A DNA stretch of 62,418 bases, filler included, from Sluysia triapertura (taxonomy: Eukaryota), in the NCBI GenBank assembly GCA_046118255.1. It is 5 parts of 5 records of this genome, joined end to end, with 100 filler letters (N's around TTAATTAATTAA, not from the genome) between each part and the next. Parts side by side here need not be neighbours in the genome. Positions count along the whole stretch, not along the records: positions 39,972 to 51,360 come from JBJNIA010185224.1; 4 more parts are not named here. One strand, written 5' to 3'. Positions 39,972-51,360 of this stretch are shown in pieces; the first letter of the stretch is position 1; each line of letters starts with the position of its first letter. The translations under genes and the position numbers were made by a program. Under the pieces are notes generated by a model, which was not told the origin of the DNA, searched no databases, and was given only the letters and a program-made list of their open reading frames with translations.

Positions 39972-40292
39972 TCTTTTTTTGAAGTGGCATTTCAAATGGA
40001 TAAAGTTTTCTTAAATGAGAGCCATAAAAATTACAAAATTTAAATTCAGTATGTTCGAAAACATCAATGTCTTCTCTAACACAGATCAAATCTGGTGGTT
40101 TCTTCAAATAGCTTTCATTTATTCTTTGTACACATCGTTGTCTGTAAAGCATAATAAGTCTATTCTACTGAACAACGCAGATTCTGGATAATGTGATCTT
40201 CTTTCTTTAATTGAAGGATTTTTCTTTATAACTAGAATACCTTTTGATCTTTTGGCATCTCTAAAAGATTTTTTTGTAATCACTGTACTCAT
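39972..40292 (-). CDS. 5' end of an unidentified gene truncated by the contig end
   Basis: ATG ORF MSTVITKKSFRDAKRSKG... and an overlapping frame QRCVQRINESYLKKPPDLICVREDIDVFEH... can be joined by a possible 32-nt GT-AG intron. Confidence 0.35.
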
Positions 40293-40817
40293 TACAAATT
40301 GCGTTGATCACTTTTCGTTTAATAATTGTGACCCAAATTTTTGAAATTTTTAGTAATTAAAACTAAAGTTTTAATTACGATTTAAAATAATATAATAATA
40401 ATAGTAATAATAAAATAAAAATAAAATAATAATAATAAAGTAATAATAATGTAATAGTAACAATAAAATAAAAATGATAAAATAATAATAAATTAATAAT
40501 AATAATAATAGTAGTAATAATAATCTTACACATGCAACCAAATTGTACATTCAAACTAAGACAATGAACTTGAGAAGGACGTAACTAACATATAATATTA
40601 AATGATGACAATTATAATTAAATTAAAATTTATAAATTATTTAATAATTATCAAAAATGAAAATTGTAACTGTACATTCTTTACAAAACACTATTTATTA
40701 AAATAATTATTGAGGTTATTTATCAAATTAAAGTTAAACTAGGGAATAATTGCCAATAAAAAAGCATGTGTTAGATAATTACCAAAACCAGAAATTATGC
40801 AAATAATAGGTGTTATT

Positions 40818-41482
40818 TCATTTTTTACATTTATGTTTACCAGAACTTTTCATTTCTTGTTGGCTTAACTTAATAGCTAATTCCAGATCAGCCTTTTCTC
40901 GTTTTCGTGCTTCTTCGATAGCTCGTGCTTCTCGGACAGATACTTCTTTGGCTAATTGCAACTGATCTGATTCCGATAATTCATTAATTTGAAAGTTTGA
41001 ATGGGTTGAAGATTTCTGATTTTGATTATAAGTATCAGTACTAATACCGAGTTTTTTATTGTTACCTTTAGTGCTTGTACCAGTGGGTGTTTTCGAGGGC
41101 CTTGGAGGGAGATGAGAACTTGTGGTTTTATTGTTGACTGTATTTTGTTGTTGATTGAGACTATCGAATGAAAAGGGATCATCAAATGCATCATGCACAT
41201 TAGCATTTTTAGTTATATTCGACTGGCTTGAAAAGTCGCCCCAAACATCAAAATCACTATTAATATTCTGTTTATCACTGGTTTCTTTATTATTAAACGA
41301 CGATGGCATATTTTTAAATAAATCTTCAACATTACTGTCTAGTAGATGAACATAATTACAACTTTGAGAGCGCTTACATTTTCCTTGTAAAAAATCTTTA
41401 CATACTGGTAATGTTTCTAAGATTGTTCCTTTGTCATTAATGTACGCAACACTAGTTTCTTCAGCCAACCTTTGTCGCACTT
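40818..41482 (-). CDS. CCCH zinc finger fused to an Eps15-like C-terminus (DPF, PPRP, tandem UIM)
   Basis: VCKDFLQGKCKRSQSCNYVH (C-x7-C-x5-C-x3-H), then DAFDDPF, LPPRPSKTP, SESDQLQLAKEVSVRE and EKADLELAIKLSQQE. There is no ATG at the 5' end; a possible acceptor CAG lies at 41483-41485. Confidence 0.75.
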
Positions 41483-42879
41483 CTGGATTAAACACATTCA
41501 AATTTATTGGTAAAAAGAAGTAAATAAGAAATTCAAAGCTTTAAAGTTTACAATAATAAATACAATAAAAAGGTAGTGCCGTAGTGATGACGAGATGGCA
41601 TCAAGCGTTACGTAAAAAAATGTTAATAAAAAATATTTTATTACGTGTTTGTGATTCGCCGGGGAAAAAGTGTGATAATGCAAATATTGTAAATGTGTTT
41701 TATTTTGATATGATTTTTGTTTGTGATGAGGTTTATGTGATTGATGGTGATAGCGACTGAGGTGTATGTAGTATAGTGAAGCGTAACACTACAGATGTAT
41801 TATAAAAATATTCATGTATTTCCACCGGCATCTTTGGTTGTTAAGTTCATGGTTCCCTGTTGTGATAAAAGAGGTCATTGTCGCATTAAATTTAGTTTAA
41901 CAGAGAAATATTAAATGCTTATATTTATTTGAAAACCAAATTTTCTAAAATTTTATCGGACATTTCAAATCCAATTAAATCCAATTCAAATATAAATAAA
42001 GATGGAAGCAAAAGGAACAAAGATTTATAATAGGTAAAAATCATTCGAAATCGCTGATAAGAAAGAAAGAAAATACATTAGAAAAATGTGTTACAAAATT
42101 ATAAAGAGTGTGTTAAAAACGAAAGTCAAAAGACATCATCGATAATATTAGACTCGTTTTATAAATATTTAATGCTTTTAAACAATTTATAATAATTTTT
42201 AATCATTAACCAAAAATGGATGTTGAAAATTGTAAAAATGGCTGCCTAATTGTATAAAACTACTTCAAATATGGAACAAATTGCTAGTGAATCATTAATT
42301 AATGTATATGGCAAAGATATATCTACGCATTCATGTGATGCCTAAAATTCATTTAATAATCTCATGTACCCACATGCGCAAAGACTCTGATGACGATTTG
42401 AACAGACAAGTTAATGTTGATTCAAAGTTGTTAATAGTTGTGTTGAACCTAATTTAGTGCCTCAAATTAAAACCAAATTAATTGTGTTTGAATTAACCGT
42501 GTGAAAATTCACAAAATTTACCTATCATAAAATTAATCAGGAGTTTGCTGAACATTTTACAATTATATAAGATATGCAAAGATAATTTTCCTTAGCTCAT
42601 TCGACCTATTCACAGAATATGATCAAAAAACTCATAATTATGGAATTAGAAATTTCTACTCATGCGTTCTATCTTAAATGAATCGATAATAATAGACCAA
42701 TCTTTAACTGTAAGTTTCTTATTCATTAAACAAAGTTTTTTATGTTTATTTGTAATTTTTATTCTAAAATTTTTTGTAATTAAATGTTTTGTTATGTAAA
42801 AAACGAGTTCAATTTTATTGTCTTATGAATTTAACTTTAGTAAAGTAAAGGTCCTTAAGACCGATGTTTATGTTAAATA

Positions 42880-42990
42880 ATTGGGGTTTTTCTTATTAGA
42901 AAAATAAATTATTATTTTGAGTCAGTTTACTGCATACGACTTACCAATGGCGTACCTGTAAAAATTACGTGAAAACATTTATTAAGATTA
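42880..42990 (+). repeat. Dispersed repeat family A
   Basis: ggggtttttctta..aaaataaattattattttgagtc..tacgacttaccaatggcgtacctgtaaaa is shared with 51960-52085. Confidence 0.85.
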
Positions 42991-43439
42991 ACCGTGTAAA
43001 ATACTCTTTGTCTTAACAAGAATGTGCAAAATCGTCTTATACCAAATTACTTAAAAATAATTGCGACCAACGTTGGCGTGTGTAATATTTGATTTTATAT
43101 AAGAAACAAAGTTAAAACATATATTGCCATTTTTATTTATGCTATTATTAAATCTTATATTAATCGTTAGACTTTTCTAAGTGTTCTAAGAAATTAGCAA
43201 ACTTATACTATAATCAGAATAGTACTTATAATTGTTTGCTGAAATAAATTAAAATGATGTTACTAATTCAATATTAAAATTATAAAAAAAGCTCATATAC
43301 AACAAAATCCAAATTTTATTATGTAACAAAATGACAATTAGAATAAAATAAGGTTAATTTATAAAAATCCAAAAAAGAACAATTATTAACAACAAAAGTT
43401 TATGAATAAAATTATAAGTGATAAAAATTAAGTTATAAT

Positions 43440-43885
43440 AAAGGTCTAGCCGTTATAATGATTTTGTAATTGACCTTAAGGACCAACTAAAAATCAGAGA
43501 ATTTATATTTTAGATTGATTTTATGATTGGCCTTAAGGACCAACCTTGAAACTTGATATTTTACATGTATATTTTAACTCAAAAGATGAATATTCAAATT
43601 ATGCATAACTTACTAATTTAATTAATAAAACTGTTAATCGGCCTCTAGTAATATTGTTAAATTTTTTGACTTGATGGATTCGAGCTTCTAATATTTGGAG
43701 AGTGCTATTCCTCTAATCGAATGTGCAGGATTTACACGACAATTTGGAGGTTGAATTGGAAATCTATGAGAACGGGTAATCTAATCTGATAATGAATTTG
43801 ATGGTGACGAGCCGGATAATGTCGATGATGATTTTTGTAGTAACTTTCTTTTCCTTGCGATACCAAAATGGCGTATTCTAATTTC
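43440..43885 (-). repeat. Dispersed repeat family C
   Basis: Inverted copy of 585-920, including hairpins at 43468-43488 and 43526-43544. Confidence 0.7.
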
Positions 43886-46800
43886 TTTGTGACTTCTTTA
43901 TTTAATTAATGCCGTCTTTCTTTATTTGTGTTTCTTTATATAGTTTTTGTATACATATTTAAAATTTTGATTTAATAAAACAATTTTATTTCTGGAAACT
44001 TCTTTTTGAATTACTCTTTTAATTTATAATTTTTTGTAATAAAAATAATAATTTTTTAATATTCTTTTTACAAAAATTTAAAAAATAAAAATTACATTTT
44101 CAAACTAATAAGGAAATTTGCATAAGCGGTCACAATTTTGGAGTCTTTAAACTGCATCTTTTCAATCAATCCTACCTTAATTCTATTGATTTCACAATCT
44201 TAGACTAATCTATAATTCATTTCATTAAATCTAAATTTGAAATTTATTTCTGCAAATTTCCTATTTCAACTTATATCATTGCTGTGTTCTATAAGACATT
44301 TTACATTCTATTACACCTATTTTCACAATACGTAAATAATGTTTTGCTATATTCATATTTCACTCGTGATCATTGTTTAAATTTCTGGGTAGATTGATTC
44401 CTACTTCAACTAAATCTGTGACTATTAGACATTCATCTTATTCAATTCATGTTACTTCTGTAATAAACCATTATTTTGAAATTTTAAAAACATTCATTTG
44501 TACGTAATACACAAAAATTCATTTTAAATGTAATTAATGAAAAGTAAACCTTTTTAAATTATAAAGAAAATCTTTAATACAAAACCAAACAAGGTTTTTA
44601 AACCTTTTCATTTCAAATTTCAACTTCTATATTTAAACAAATTTGCTAAATATTTTTAAAATACATAACATAAAAATGAACTAATTATTAAAAGAAATAA
44701 ACCATATGAAGTTAGAAAAGCGGTATAACATACAAAATAAGACATCGTTGAATCAAAAATTTGGGATTAATTTAAAGTTGAACAAAATTACTAAATTTTT
44801 CTATATGATCACTTATAATACTATTTTAAATCCTTTTTTATTTAGTACCCAGATTTGAAACTTAGATATAAATATATTAAATGCAAAAGCAAAAATGAAT
44901 TACTAAAAATAAAATATAAAAATCTTTCAAATGTGATATGTTAATGTAAAAATTATGACATGTCTCCGTTATCATTTTGCATTATTTTAATTATTTCATA
45001 CTATTTCATAATTTTTTCATGTTAATATTTAATTAAATGTTGAATAAATCAATATTTAAATTTATTTTATTTAATAATACAAAATTAAAAAAATTGACTA
45101 ATTGTATTAAAAAGCATTGTACACCAACCATGTTAATCGTGAAAATAAAGTTATTATATTTTCAGAGTAAAATTTATGTAAGAGATAAGATTTATAAAAT
45201 GTTATAGGATGTCGAGTTTCCGATGGTTAGACCTTCAACTATATTAAGTAATTTTTGTAATAATTATTTAATTATTACATAGGAATTTAAGACATTTATT
45301 ATAGTCGAATCCAATACTAGAATCACATTTTGCACAAAGTATTAATAAGTTTTTGATAATATAAAAGTTACGAAGTTAGATTATCAATAAAATGTTAATT
45401 AAAACTGACAATCAAAAACTTCATTGTTAATCGACAATAAGTTACTCTACATCGATCCTAGTCAACTTTTCGAAAATAATTTTGATTAACGAGTCATTAT
45501 ATAAAAAGCAAGATTATTAAGCAACCGCCAGAAGACTTTGTGCAGAAAACCAATTCAAGAAATCTAATTTTTGATTATGGCCTTTTTGCGTAAGTTTTAT
45601 TACTTTTAATTGTTCTAATTTAATATTAGGAATATAAGTCATACATTAAAATAGTTTATTTTCTAGCTAAATTAAAGTTAGTTACACAATCACATTAAAC
45701 TATCGAAAAAATAATTAATATTATAATTATTAATTACAATTATTAATAATATTATTATTAACATTAGCATTCCGAAGTTAATCTTTAATTACCACCTTTC
45801 AATACATTTATTGTAGTCGCTTATTGATAGCATTTAATTTATTTTGTCGTTTATTTATTCATTTAGTTGTTTTATTCGTTTATTAATTATGAAAGTAGTT
45901 TTTTATTATTGAGTTATCATTGTACATCCATAGCGTCTTATGTGTAGATAACAATTCTAGCATAATTTTATTGTTCATATTAGTGAACGCATATTGGTTT
46001 TACTTATTCTCTTTTTATTTAAAATAGAAATAAAGATTAACTGTAAAGATCAGTTGGCTGAATAACTAAGTAGCATAGTAAATATTGTCTAACCTGAGAA
46101 AAGTTTTCCTTTTTAATTTAGAGTGAAGTTGAAAGATGAGTCAACCGAGCTTTGTGAATTGAACAGATCTAAAGTAACACATTAACTAAACTTAGAAGTT
46201 TGCAAAATATAAGATAAATAAATTTTTGAATTACAAAGAACCGCATCAGATGTCCAAAAGAAACATGCGAGTACTAGTGAAGCCGTGAATTAGATTAACA
46301 GCGATTAAATTTTATAAACATACTATTGGATTAAATTTTACGATGATACTTTCCTTATCCTATAGGTACACCTCTAAAGGGAATATAAACCTGTAGTGTA
46401 AGCAAACCCAAAGTTTAAAAATATTTGTGGGTCGTTTTTCCAAGAGAAATACTTACATAATGTACTACTATTAAAAATTAATTTAAGTTTCATATGTAGC
46501 ATTATCTATTGTAAGAAATACTAATCTCAGTTCCATTGTAACTAATGGTGTCATATCGAAGACAAGTGAAACGCATTAAAACTTATAAAGTTTAAGAAGT
46601 ACTTTTAACATTTTGAAATATATTAACTATAGCACACAATATATAATACGTAAAATGAATGGCTTTTCGTGTACATGATAACTAAATAGACTAATTAAAT
46701 TAATATTTTTATTTCAACTGAAATTTCATAATAAATTTGTTCAAAAATAATTTAAAGTTGAATAATAATTGAAATTCATTCTAGTTTAAGTTTTGTAATT

Positions 46801-49242
46801 AAATTTAATGATATTTTGTTTTAATTTTTATTTATAATATTTTTTGAAAATGTATTAATTATTTAGGAGTTTTTTGATTATTCATCGTCTATGGAACTAC
46901 TCGATTTTTTATCAGGTAAAAAATTATGATTAAAAGTTGACAAGTGAAAGATTATTATTATTATTGTTATTATTGAGAGTTATTTAAATTTACTTTTTCT
47001 CACAAAATGAAATTTAAATGGGCTCACCCATAGCAAACAACTTTCGACCTTAAAGGTGAGTACTCCTGTAAGGTTTTAAACGAATGGTATCTTAATAAAT
47101 TTTACAAATTCCTAAATTCTGTTGGTTTGAAGAATTTTAATGCAATGTAGGGTAAGGTTGCTCAACAAACTACGGCGGCAACAGCATATACGTCGGCAAT
47201 TAAATATACATCTGAGTGAGTTAAGTTGTGCGACATATTACAATTTACCGTAAGCAAGCCACGTTGTAAATTTTCTCATCAAGTTAGTTTATTTCAATTT
47301 TCTTATAATTTTCTGGATATGTTTGGTAGTTAATTCTTGCTAATTATTGATAAAATTGTTTCATATTAAACATAAGTTCAGTAGAATTTGGTCGAAACGA
47401 AATCCTATTAATTTTATTCATTATTAAGTGATGTTTAGTTTGAAATAGGTGGCACGACTTAAGAAACAAGTTGACTTAGTTGTACCGAAGTAAGTTTTTA
47501 AGGAATTAGTTTACGTGAAAGCATATAGATTTTTCTAATTTAGTTATACATGATACCAATATTAACAAAGTGTTGAATAACACATTTAATTTCTATTTAT
47601 TTGATAAATCCTAAGTTTTATACAGTTCTTTTCTTAAGGGCTATGACTTGGGCAACCTTATCCTATTATTCCAAATGGAATCTACCGTATTCCAAACTGT
47701 CTACCAACGACCATTTAATTACTTATAGCTATTTAAATACCAATCTTTGTTTTTAGAAACGAATAATTCTTCAGAACCATATTTATACTGGTTCCTTAAA
47801 AATGAGACATTGACTGAAACAATAATAATCTGAAGAATAAAGATCTGGATTATCAAGATCATCTAATAATTTCTTTGTTTTTTTTCGACTTGTGAGGTTT
47901 CACATTATCTGTTAATAATTTTAAATAACGATCAATAATAATATATTCCAATTCTTGATTGCTTACAATATATGTAAACCGAGTAGTATGCATCATTTCA
48001 AATTGTATTGTATCTTCAAAATTGCAAAAACAGTTAATAATAATGTTTCTCACATTTCCCTCTTAACGAGTTAATCAATTTCACTTTTACCTAAGCAAGC
48101 ACTCTTTTTCACATTTGTTTGCGATAATATTTTTGAAAGTCTTATATTGTTGGGATGTTCTAACAAATGGAAATAATAATTAATTTTAGCGATTTCAAAG
48201 TCCAAAATAGAGTCGATCGAAAAAGTTGAAGCTCATTTGCTAGTTTCTGTTGACCACCTCTATTTTTGTCTTTAAGCTTCAATCATCCATCATTTATTTA
48301 CAATATTTTCATTAGTGATTCTAGCATCCTACTTCGCATATCATTCTACATGCATCTGATGCTGAGATTCATTGTCTTAATAATGCCTGAGCAAGCCACA
48401 TTTTACAAATATTTCTATCTTCATTTTATTAAAATTCAATTAATTTAAAAAGAGGAGTAATTGAATCATTAAAACAAAAATGTAAAACACCATCTTTAAA
48501 ACTGTGGATTAATTTTGATGATAAGTTGAATTGTAATACAAAAAGTTATATTAATTACGGGCAACTGAATAAACATTTGCATTGTAATACATATTTAATC
48601 CTTACCAAAATAAACCTATATTATTTTTGCAAAAAAATAAATTATTTAAAATAAATTATATAAAATTTTACATTTAAATTAAACATTACAAATATACATA
48701 TTATTTTTATAGTTTGAGGTATAATTCTTCTAAATTTAAAAATTAAAATTAAAACCTATTGTTTTGTATTAACATTGGCATTTTAGGAATAGCAATTAAA
48801 ACTAATGAAAAATTGTTCCATTTATTTAATATTTTAATATTGTACGTATTACTAATTTTACGTACAATTATCATAGGTTTATCTAACTGAAAATTACTCT
48901 AATAACTTCTAATAATATCTCTTAGATAATTTCATAAATAATTTGAGCATGTAGGAGGAAAATATCGAAAAATATTTTTGAAATTGTAATAAGTGTTCAA
49001 ATGAATGTATTCATCCATTTTGAATATTTTTCTTTTGTTATTAATTCAATAAATTTACGACGTTCTTTAATTTTTCAAGAAATAACATTTACAACATTTA
49101 TTAAAACCTGATAATTGAAAGTTAAGAGAAAATATTTACGTAAGTAAATTTGGTTAGTATAAATTTGGTTAATTATTAATATTTAGGAATATTTTTTAAT
49201 AAAAAATACATTTAATTTTATAAGTTAAATAAATTTATTTAG

Positions 49243-49424
49243 ATGAACCAAGTTTACATAATTTATCAAATCAAAATTTTAACAGAAAACAAAACAATCA
49301 GAAGCGTCCATGTTGCTCACCAAATACATATGATGATATAAAAGTAATGGCACGTATGGCTAATAATAAAGTTCGAAAGAGTGTTATTCGTGGTATTTTA
49401 GCTGGATCTTGCACATGCTTATAA
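49243..49424 (+). CDS. Terminal exon of a TGF-beta superfamily ligand
   Basis: After the acceptor tttatttag: EPSLHNLSNQNFNRKQNNQKRPCCSPNTYDDIKVMARMANNKVRKSVIRGILAGSCTCL*. This is the PCCxP...CxCx-stop cystine-knot C-terminus. Upstream exons are unresolved. Confidence 0.75.
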
Positions 49425-51360
49425 CATTTAAATGCTAAATGCGTATAAAACTCACTCGACACTTTAATAACGTAAAACTTTTGTTCTCAAAAACTAAATC
49501 AAATTCCCTTTTCAAAAATTTATATTTTTTTTATTATCATTTTTCGTTATCGCTCCATTTACTAAATACAATAAGTTTCTCTCTTTGTATTTTTCAACTT
49601 TGTGGTTTCATTTTTTTTTCATATTTTTCATTATCATTTTTAAATGAACATTGAATATTTATTATTTACGATATATAGTTAGAGATTAATTTATTTTATN
49701 NNNNNNNNNNNNNNNNNNNNNNNNNNNNNNNNNNNNNNNNNNNNNNNNNNNNNNNNNNNNNNNNNNNNNNNNNNNNNNNNNNNNNNNNNNNNNNNNNNNN
49801 NNNNNNNNNNNNNNNNNNNNNNNNNNNNNNNNNTATCCGTAAAAATATGAAGTTTAAGATTTATTTATAAATAAAAATATGTTTCATTGCATATCAAATT
49901 TGAAAATTATCACTGAAATATATGCTTCAATTTGATTTATGATAGCGGTAAAATTGTGATTTTATTTCATATATTGATTTTGTCAGTTCTACTTTAACTA
50001 CAATAAACTGAAATTAACTGTAATAAACAAAATGTCAATGGTAAAATAATTTGTTATATCATCAATGTAATGTTAGTTCCAATTTTATTTTAAAGCTGAC
50101 AAAAGTTCAAATATGTTAATAATCAATATTTTACCTAAGTTATGATGGGGCGGTGCATATAAATTGCCGGTGTTATAATTTGTATTTATAATAAAATACT
50201 TTTGAAGTTTTTGTTGTACAATAATTATTAATATTGTGATTGTGTTGTGAAACTGAAATGATTATTAAATTTGAAAATAAGAATATTTAAATTTGTATTA
50301 TTTTATAGTTTAAAAATAAGTATAATAATTATTATTATTATTATCAATTTAACATGCAAATTTAAATTTTCAAACGACTCTTTTGTACGTTTTATTTAAA
50401 TGTTATTAAAAATAGAATTTGCAAAATAATTGAAAAATTAAATACATTTGGTAACGAAATATAAATTGGAAAATGTCTTTTTAACTTCATTCATATTACT
50501 ACATTCGAAAAACAATTGTTTTATAAAATTAAAATATAATATTGAGAAAATTAATTGAAGTTAAACGTTAATAGAATAAAGGTTAAAGATGTGAGTTCAC
50601 CAACGTACTGGACTTACCAGCGAGGGCCAGCCGTTGGATTTGGTAAATTAAAAGTTATGGAGGTTAAGTCAAAAAATTTATTAGATTTCTTAGATATAAG
50701 CTAACTTCTTCAATTATTATATATTAATTTAATAATTACAAATTATTTAAAGGTTTAAATGTGATTTTACGTGGATTCTGTGAAATAGGATCAAAATGAT
50801 TATATTACAACGTTAGAATTACACTCTAACCAGAATTTTTTAACTATCGTGCGATTTTTTCTTTATTTTGTAACTATAAAAATTAGATTCGATTCAAAGA
50901 TAAAGAAAAGTTTAAATTTACAAAATATATTATAAAAATGTTCACGGTTGTATTATATGTATAAAATATTATTCTAGAATTAATCAAAATTATTTTTTAA
51001 CTTGAAAAATATTAATATGATTTTACCAGGAATCTATTTACATAAAGGATTTTTAGTGAGATTTTGCGAATGATATCTTGTTGATATCGAGTCTTATAAA
51101 AAATAAACTAACTATACAACTCAGATAATTTATATGAAAATAATGCTTTGAGTCGCTGGATAATTAAACTTCTCGTCGAAGAGAGCTACAATTTTAAAGA
51201 GCGTCTTTGAAATATGAATTCTGTTCCAAATCAAAAATAAATAGAGTGTGGAATACGATTCTGTTTTAAAGTCAGAAAAACAGTAGTGTGAGCAATAGCA
51301 AAAAATTTTGTCTATTTATATTTGTTTTAGTCTGACCTTGGTCAGACTAAAACAAAACTA

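Follow-up and report, generated by a model that had tools for sequence, protein, structure and literature searches.

A muscleblind-type CCCH finger and a candidate tandem-UIM tail in one open reading frame of Sluysia triapertura

The window analysed here is the whole stretch of 62,418 nucleotides, filler included, from the genome of Sluysia triapertura (GCA_046118255.1), and the region of interest is an 11.4 kb piece of it (positions 39972-51360, record JBJNIA010185224.1). This piece is AT-rich, with a GC content of about 24%, and contains a single long open frame, which lies on the minus strand, runs without stops from 41540 to 40821 and ends with the stop codon at 40820-40818. The 240 open codons exceed the maximum of 147 reached in 200 simulations (first-order Markov, 11-kb sequences, composition of the piece) and also the simulated maximum of 192 obtained when the Markov model uses the ORF's own composition. 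A reading made earlier from the sequence only had described one uninterrupted frame from a CCCH finger to a UIM tail, and a length beyond all simulations bears this out. The GC content of the ORF is 0.33-0.34 as compared with 0.24 in the surroundings; it is alike (0.34) in the finger part and in the tail, and in each of them GC1 > GC2 > GC3. In-frame stops are absent from the finger part and from the tail, and the other frames contain 2-30. Because the length is beyond chance, the GC and codon-position patterns of the two parts are alike and the frame is free of stops, the ORF is a genuine coding sequence of one genome.

Upstream of the finger the frame contains no ATG. For the "start" that the ORF tool proposed at 41501 the codon is TTG, and the first in-frame ATG is codon 65 (41307-41309, minus strand), which has an A at -3 and lies six codons past the point where the homology described below ends. 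Because no ATG precedes the finger and a good putative splice acceptor lies upstream of it, the ORF is probably a 3'-terminal exon, not a complete gene, and the gene model is incomplete. The exon most plausibly begins at position 41482 and is entered in phase 1 after this acceptor. An AATAAA located 119 nt past the stop is a possible polyadenylation signal; such a motif is a weak indication in AT-rich DNA, and from the stop codon to 40400 it occurs once only. The 9.9 kb upstream yielded neither an upstream exon nor a start codon, no ZnF1/2 pair was found in 41500-51360, and no further muscleblind exon was detected in the piece by tblastn with 17 muscleblind relatives or when 20 other open segments were scanned with Pfam; upstream exons may lie outside the piece. 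Rfam and tRNA scans of the piece gave no match, and NCBIfam returned noise only. The features of the locus are collected in Table 1.

Table 1. Features of the finger-UIM exon and its flanks, in positions of the window.
Feature	Position	Strand	Basis
Probable 3'-terminal coding exon (finger, tail and stop)	40818-41482	-	Open frame to 41540, GC, codon-position pattern
T-rich tract ending ...tttaatccAG (AG = 41484-41483), likely 3' splice site, phase 1	41483-41530	-	Sequence inspection
Block homologous to muscleblind/MBNL ZnF3, including the N-terminal strand and the inter-finger linker start (TSVAYINDKG...HLLDSNVE)	41325-41456	-	phmmer, tblastn
CCCH finger CKDFLQGKCKRSQSCNYVH, C-x7-C-x5-C-x3-H	41346-41402	-	Pattern and Pfam
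Site of ancient phase-1 intron, absent here; A/GT is the Ser codon of SNVE	41335-41336	-	Paragonimus and Cloeon genes
Homology break GAA/GAT	41324-41325	-	Relatives go on with Val (GTN) and finger 4; here DLFKNM...
Disordered middle with short motifs of the clathrin-adaptor-appendage-binding kind	41097-41243	-	Motif scan, AlphaFold pLDDT
WGDF	41243-41232	-	Motif
FDDPF (contains DPF, fits FxDxF)	41186-41172	-	Motif
PPRP	41108-41097	-	Motif
UIM 1 core SESDQLQLAKEVSVRE	40929-40976	-	Motif; helix pLDDT above 90
UIM 2 core REKADLELAIKLSQQE	40854-40901	-	Motif; Pfam UIM below cut-off
AATAAA, possible polyadenylation signal	40694-40699	-	119 nt past stop; weak in AT-rich DNA

The finger was found where it had been placed. 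Muscleblind/MBNL fingers have the spacing C-x7-C-x4-6-C-x3-H, within which the present one falls; all of its zinc ligands are intact, and it scores 21.8 bits against the Pfam zf-CCCH profile (cut-off 20.5). When phmmer was run exhaustively against 1.84 billion representative proteins, it returned 283 matches with E up to 0.001. Most of these are multi-CCCH proteins in which the single finger was matched repeatedly. A distinct group, with one match each over query residues 9-52 at 55-68% identity, consists of muscleblind/MBNL proteins; its members come from the trematodes Clonorchis, Paragonimus and Schistosoma japonicum and the monogenean Cichlidogyrus and, more remotely, from a cestode, a nematode, a mayfly and a sponge. 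The block is 61-68% identical over 44 amino acids to the proteins of the four named flatworms, and Clonorchis and Paragonimus gave a phmmer E of 3e-11 with 68% identity over residues 9-52. Local tblastn to the muscleblind relatives gave E values of about 1e-16 to 1e-17. The best matches in the PDB were the 2e5s finger pair and MBNL1 ZnF3/4 (3d2q), with E between 5e-5 and 7e-5 (6.6e-5 for 3d2q). Besides the finger, the aligned span takes in the strand ahead of it and the first residues of the inter-finger linker; this exon reads TSVAYINDKGTILETLPVCKDF...CNYVHLLDSNVE and the trematodes read TNVAYINDKGHLLETLPICRDF...CRYVHLVDENVE.

Clonorchis sinensis KAG5447517.1 has in common with this exon a ZnF3 block with the VAYINDKG-x-LETLP strand, the same spacing and the D-x-NVE linker start. 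The same holds for the Paragonimus "Muscleblind protein 3" (KAF7233796.1), the S. japonicum "Muscleblind-like protein 3" (KAH8852135.1) and the Cichlidogyrus protein KAL3315298.1. In these flatworm proteins finger 4 follows as V-N-Q-G-R-V-x-V-C-R-D-A-A-K-G-R-C, and the end is short and rich in Ala and Ser, whereas the exon described here is without finger 4 and has a 168-residue UIM tail in its place. ZC3H10-type proteins, represented by two from insects and by a metagenome locus (L003), have a nearly identical core in one finger, and PVCKDFLQGKC is common to this exon and to L003. Their flanks, however, are unlike, and the best ZC3H10-type match reaches 48% over 36 residues as compared with 68% over 44 for MBNL ZnF3. 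In addition, ZC3H10 consists of three fingers and a coiled coil, none of which occurs in this exon. The label "muscleblind/ZC3H10-like" first given is correct, and from its alignments the finger is identified more precisely as muscleblind finger 3. The metagenome locus (L003, 35-838, plus strand), on a 1.4-kb JGI contig, is a eukaryotic gene for a complete ZC3H10-like protein of 267 residues; it has three CCCH fingers and a coiled-coil tail, and the PVCKDFLQGKC core is in the third finger.

All tblastn alignments to the muscleblind relatives stop at ...SNVE (41325), within one base of the switch placed at about 41324 by the sequence-only reading. That reading had also expected a second finger at this point, and finger 4 follows in 16 out of 16 relatives with the NVE motif, in the form V or I, x-x-G/N-x-V-x-x-C-R-D... 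The sequence past the break is DLFKNMPSS... and is not finger 4. None of the relatives joins the finger to UIMs. The ZnF3-ZnF4 tandem with its NVEV-x-x-G-x-V linker is missing, and no second CCCH was detected when all six frames of the piece (11.4 kb) were scanned. A frameshifted finger 4 in another frame was ruled out, as neither a tblastn match nor a CCCH pattern was obtained.

The switch had also been taken to look like an exon-exon junction of the parent gene, and exons were mapped in three muscleblind genes, from Paragonimus (L002), the mayfly Cloeon (L004) and Cichlidogyrus (L001). In Paragonimus and Cloeon the finger core is in a small exon between two introns. The downstream intron is in phase 1, with ...GAT G/gtgggt...ag/AA AAC GTT GAA in Paragonimus and ...GAG A/gtaagt...cag/GT AAT GTG GAG in Cloeon. 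The present exon reads A-GT-AAT-GTT-GAA, the equivalent of the spliced junction at 41336/41335 with no intron, and the Cichlidogyrus gene is likewise without both introns. The introns that bracket ZnF3 are identical in position and phase in Paragonimus (L002:19792-27285) and Cloeon (L004:1001-4592), and both are missing in Cichlidogyrus (L001:4224-4658) and here. The phase-1 intron, common to a trematode and a mayfly, is hence old, and the intron pair of the ZnF3 core is an old one that was lost in particular lineages. The break lies 11 nt downstream of the ancestral intron site, which, judged from the three mapped genes, puts it inside the ancestral finger-4 exon and not at a parental exon boundary; the junction suggested earlier is to that extent not supported, the intron of Paragonimus and Cloeon being 11 nt upstream.

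The break directly precedes the invariant Val codon (GTN) of the relatives, and it may be speculated that the GT of this codon served as a cryptic donor in an ancestor. Because no GT or GC follows 41325, the break is without a donor in the present sequence. Both GTs nearby are poor donors: the one at 41335 would put the conserved SNVE into an intron, and the one at 41330 (GTTGAA) fits the consensus at the GT only. A donor A/GTAATG at 41336/41335 was ruled out, since SNVE would then be intronic and its match to the relatives a chance event, with a probability estimated at about 5e-4. SNVE is contiguous with the finger, as in the spliced junction of Cloeon (A/GT AAT GTG GAG), and the coding homology therefore runs through 41325.

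The weak donor AAT/GTTGAA (41331/41330) could nevertheless belong to a canonical mbnl gene, in which it would be spliced to a finger-4 exon beyond 39972 and the UIM tail would be translated only when the donor is skipped. Muscleblind genes use many alternative 3' ends (PMC3315501), a phase-0 donor is always read through as Val so that only the next Glu would be coincidental, and the edge of the piece is just 846 nt beyond the stop, which leaves room for a later exon. The donor consensus, however, is met by GTTGAA at the GT alone, no finger-4 remnant was found in the 846 nt downstream by tblastn or CCCH pattern, and two perfect UIMs with 168 open codons would be unusual for intron read-through. 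Such a composite terminal exon is considered quite unlikely. A conserved composite exon of this kind in Paragonimus was ruled out, as read-through of the donor there hits a stop after a few codons.

The tail after the break comprises 168 residues. The DPF, the PPRP and the two UIM helices described for it are all present, as seen in the motif scan and, for the helices, in the AlphaFold model. The UIM cores are 25 residues apart, and the protein ends 11 residues beyond UIM 2. Both fit the PF02809 consensus (acidic-x-x-hydrophobic-x-x-Ala-x-x-x-Ser-x-x-acidic), and two such cores arise by chance in 6e-5 of composition-preserving shuffles of the tail. The Pfam UIM profile (PF02809) gave 15.9 bits (E 0.012) for the 60-residue end, below the cut-off of 21, as is common for so short a motif. 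Single-sequence AlphaFold modelling placed ORF residues 177-219 in one helix with a pLDDT of 93-97 and gave a pLDDT below 50 for residues 66-154. The tail is predicted to bind ubiquitin and perhaps AP-2.

Eps15 ends in an appendage-binding DPF-type motif, a proline-rich patch and two UIMs at the extreme end, in that order. The tail resembles Eps15/Eps15R in this motif order and in the two C-terminal UIMs, a likeness judged at the motif level only, but Eps15/Eps15R carry a long DPF array as compared with one DPF here (within FDDPF). No significant similarity of the tail to Eps15 appeared in the phmmer, word or PDB searches, and no EH domain or coiled coil of Eps15 was matched by Pfam in the ORF or in the 20 other open segments. 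The match to the Eps15/Eps15R C-terminus claimed at first is reduced in this way to a likeness of motifs, as no search returned Eps15 or any relative of the tail. Among the best 150 of the 283 phmmer matches none is a relative of the tail, all of those with E below 1.4e-5 being finger-based. Word searches with the whole ORF and with the tail from Met65 gave no match, in an index that also missed known relatives of the same length. Both look-ups in the ESM Atlas were without a match, and no tail-like sequence was found in the muscleblind loci of Cichlidogyrus and Paragonimus. The sole solved structure that aligned to the two-UIM segment is the tandem UIM of AIRAPL/ZFAND2B (PDB 4xkh), with an E of 0.56 that is not significant; the alignment takes in both UIMs with one gap in the linker. 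AIRAPL/ZFAND2B is a zinc-finger protein with C-terminal tandem UIMs, but its fingers are of the AN1 and not the CCCH type, and its CAAX-type end is absent here.

The position of the first ATG raises the question of whether the two parts are separate units that are in frame by accident, namely a relic or separately spliced fragment of a ZnF3 exon ending after SNVE, followed by an independent intronless UIM gene with Met65 (41309) as its start and a disordered protein of 163 residues as its product. It is consistent with this that the first in-frame ATG has an A at -3 and comes so soon after the break, with none before the finger. Only nine codons separate the end of the finger from this ATG, and the chance that they are stop-free and in frame is roughly 0.15 as estimated from the stop frequency; moreover, the tail is without relatives under either reading. 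Against two units, the finger block is intact with all its ligands, and its 72 open codons are to be compared with 2 and 9 stops in the other frames. The good acceptor before the finger suggests that it is still spliced into a message, and any transcript containing the finger would have four out-of-frame ATGs ahead of Met65. No small homologue of the tail was found in the databases searched. Two independent units are regarded as unlikely.

A further explanation is that two unrelated loci of the same genome were misjoined at about 41324 during assembly or amplification. The source scaffold is of draft quality and contains an N gap, the piece is short, and the junction is without an independent copy in the collections searched, the metagenome scan having given the ZC3H10-like locus L003 only. 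GC content and codon-position pattern are, however, alike on both sides, the 16-mers at the junction each occur once in the window so that no repeat is available to drive a misjoin, the join is in frame, and the N gap is 8 kb distant. Such a chimera is judged very unlikely. A chimera between species was rejected because the composition is the same on either side of the break. Human origin of the contig was also rejected, its GC being 24% and its closest relatives MBNL proteins of flatworm type. The N run itself consists of 134 bases (49700-49833), either a gap or masked sequence, and marks a scaffolded draft.

That no protein of this architecture was known has held up. A muscleblind finger with UIMs was not encountered by phmmer in the 1.84 billion representative proteins, and a literature search gave no description of UIMs in a muscleblind or CCCH protein, the papers returned for CCCH with UIM being mostly reviews of the PARP family. 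No orthologue with the finger-UIM architecture was found, and for this reason conservation cannot be shown. The exon stands about an even chance of being the terminal exon of an mbnl-like gene of the muscleblind family, or of an isoform, in an AT-rich invertebrate, most likely a flatworm, in which finger 4 has been replaced by a UIM tail. A lineage-specific muscleblind paralogue or isoform is the most economical and the best reading of the locus; the join may have come about by exon shuffling or retroposition. Against a fusion count the lack of an orthologue, the failure to find an upstream exon or start codon and the gapped draft scaffold. In addition, one finger of a tandem pair may on its own be poor at folding or at binding RNA, and the ATG in good context six codons past the break resembles the start of an independent tail gene.

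Drosophila mbl proteins have been reported to share their N-terminus and to differ in their C-termini, some of which are truncated (PMC3315501). Planarians have been reported to possess four mbnl paralogues, in which the finger pairs number one or two (PMC4978528). Anchoring of MBNL1 at membranes through its unstructured C-terminal tail has also been described (PMC10256740). A fusion fits the family because C-termini vary, planarian paralogues exist and the MBNL1 tail anchors at membranes.

On the fusion reading, the exon carries finger 3 of the ZnF3/4 tandem pair and, 11 nt into the ancestral finger-4 exon and just before the invariant Val (GTN), switches to an unrelated tail of 168 residues. 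This tail is predicted to be disordered, has adaptor-appendage-type motifs (WGDF, FDDPF) and ends in one long predicted helix with two UIMs. The protein would keep one GC-recognising finger and whatever the upstream exons supply, so that it may bind RNA, perhaps weakly, and its C-terminus would gain ubiquitin binding and probably endocytic-adaptor binding in place of finger 4. Through the tail it could attach to ubiquitinated proteins and possibly also to the appendages of AP-2. The ORF, the finger homology with its end point, the lack of finger 4, the UIM motifs and the comparison of intron positions are observations, whereas we infer the splice acceptor, the expression as one protein, the RNA binding and the ubiquitin or AP-2 binding in this model. 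A more specific proposal, that a paralogue of the flatworm lineage with finger 4 swapped for AP-2-type motifs and a tandem UIM directly links GC-containing RNAs with ubiquitinated cargo, or with clathrin-adaptor hubs, at membranes, is tentative and somewhat unlikely.

Muscleblind proteins have been studied mainly as splicing regulators and, according to recent work, also act in RNA localisation and in membrane docking through unstructured C-terminal tails. If tethering were true, the tail would be a hard-wired form of the membrane anchoring ascribed to the disordered MBNL1 tail. The variant would be a clean case of domain swapping in an RNA-binding protein and could be used to test whether a single MBNL finger delivers RNA to sites of endocytosis or sites marked with ubiquitin. 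If the locus were instead a misassembly, or a relic exon next to a small orphan gene with UIMs, it would be of little more than annotation interest.

Other features were observed in the same piece. A ligand domain of the TGF-beta family is encoded in its C-terminal half on the plus strand at 49278-49424 (…RPCCSPNTYDDIKV…GSCTCL, then a stop), with a Pfam TGF_beta score of 31.5 bits (cut-off 27) over profile positions 57-104 of 104 and with ...ttttaacag preceding it. This segment resembles the final exon of a TGF-beta/activin/BMP-like gene that runs on the other strand, some 8 kb upstream of the finger-UIM exon; the piece did not yield the N-terminal half of the domain. Downstream of the finger-UIM exon, a 64-codon open segment without a Pfam match (39973-40164, minus strand) runs into the edge of the piece and may be due to chance or belong to the next gene as an exon. 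At 40383-40524, about 300 nt past the putative polyadenylation signal, lies a microsatellite based on (AAT)n, with higher-order periods of 28 and 53 nt, and a similar A/T-rich stretch at 46941-46999 is a 75% inverted match to it.
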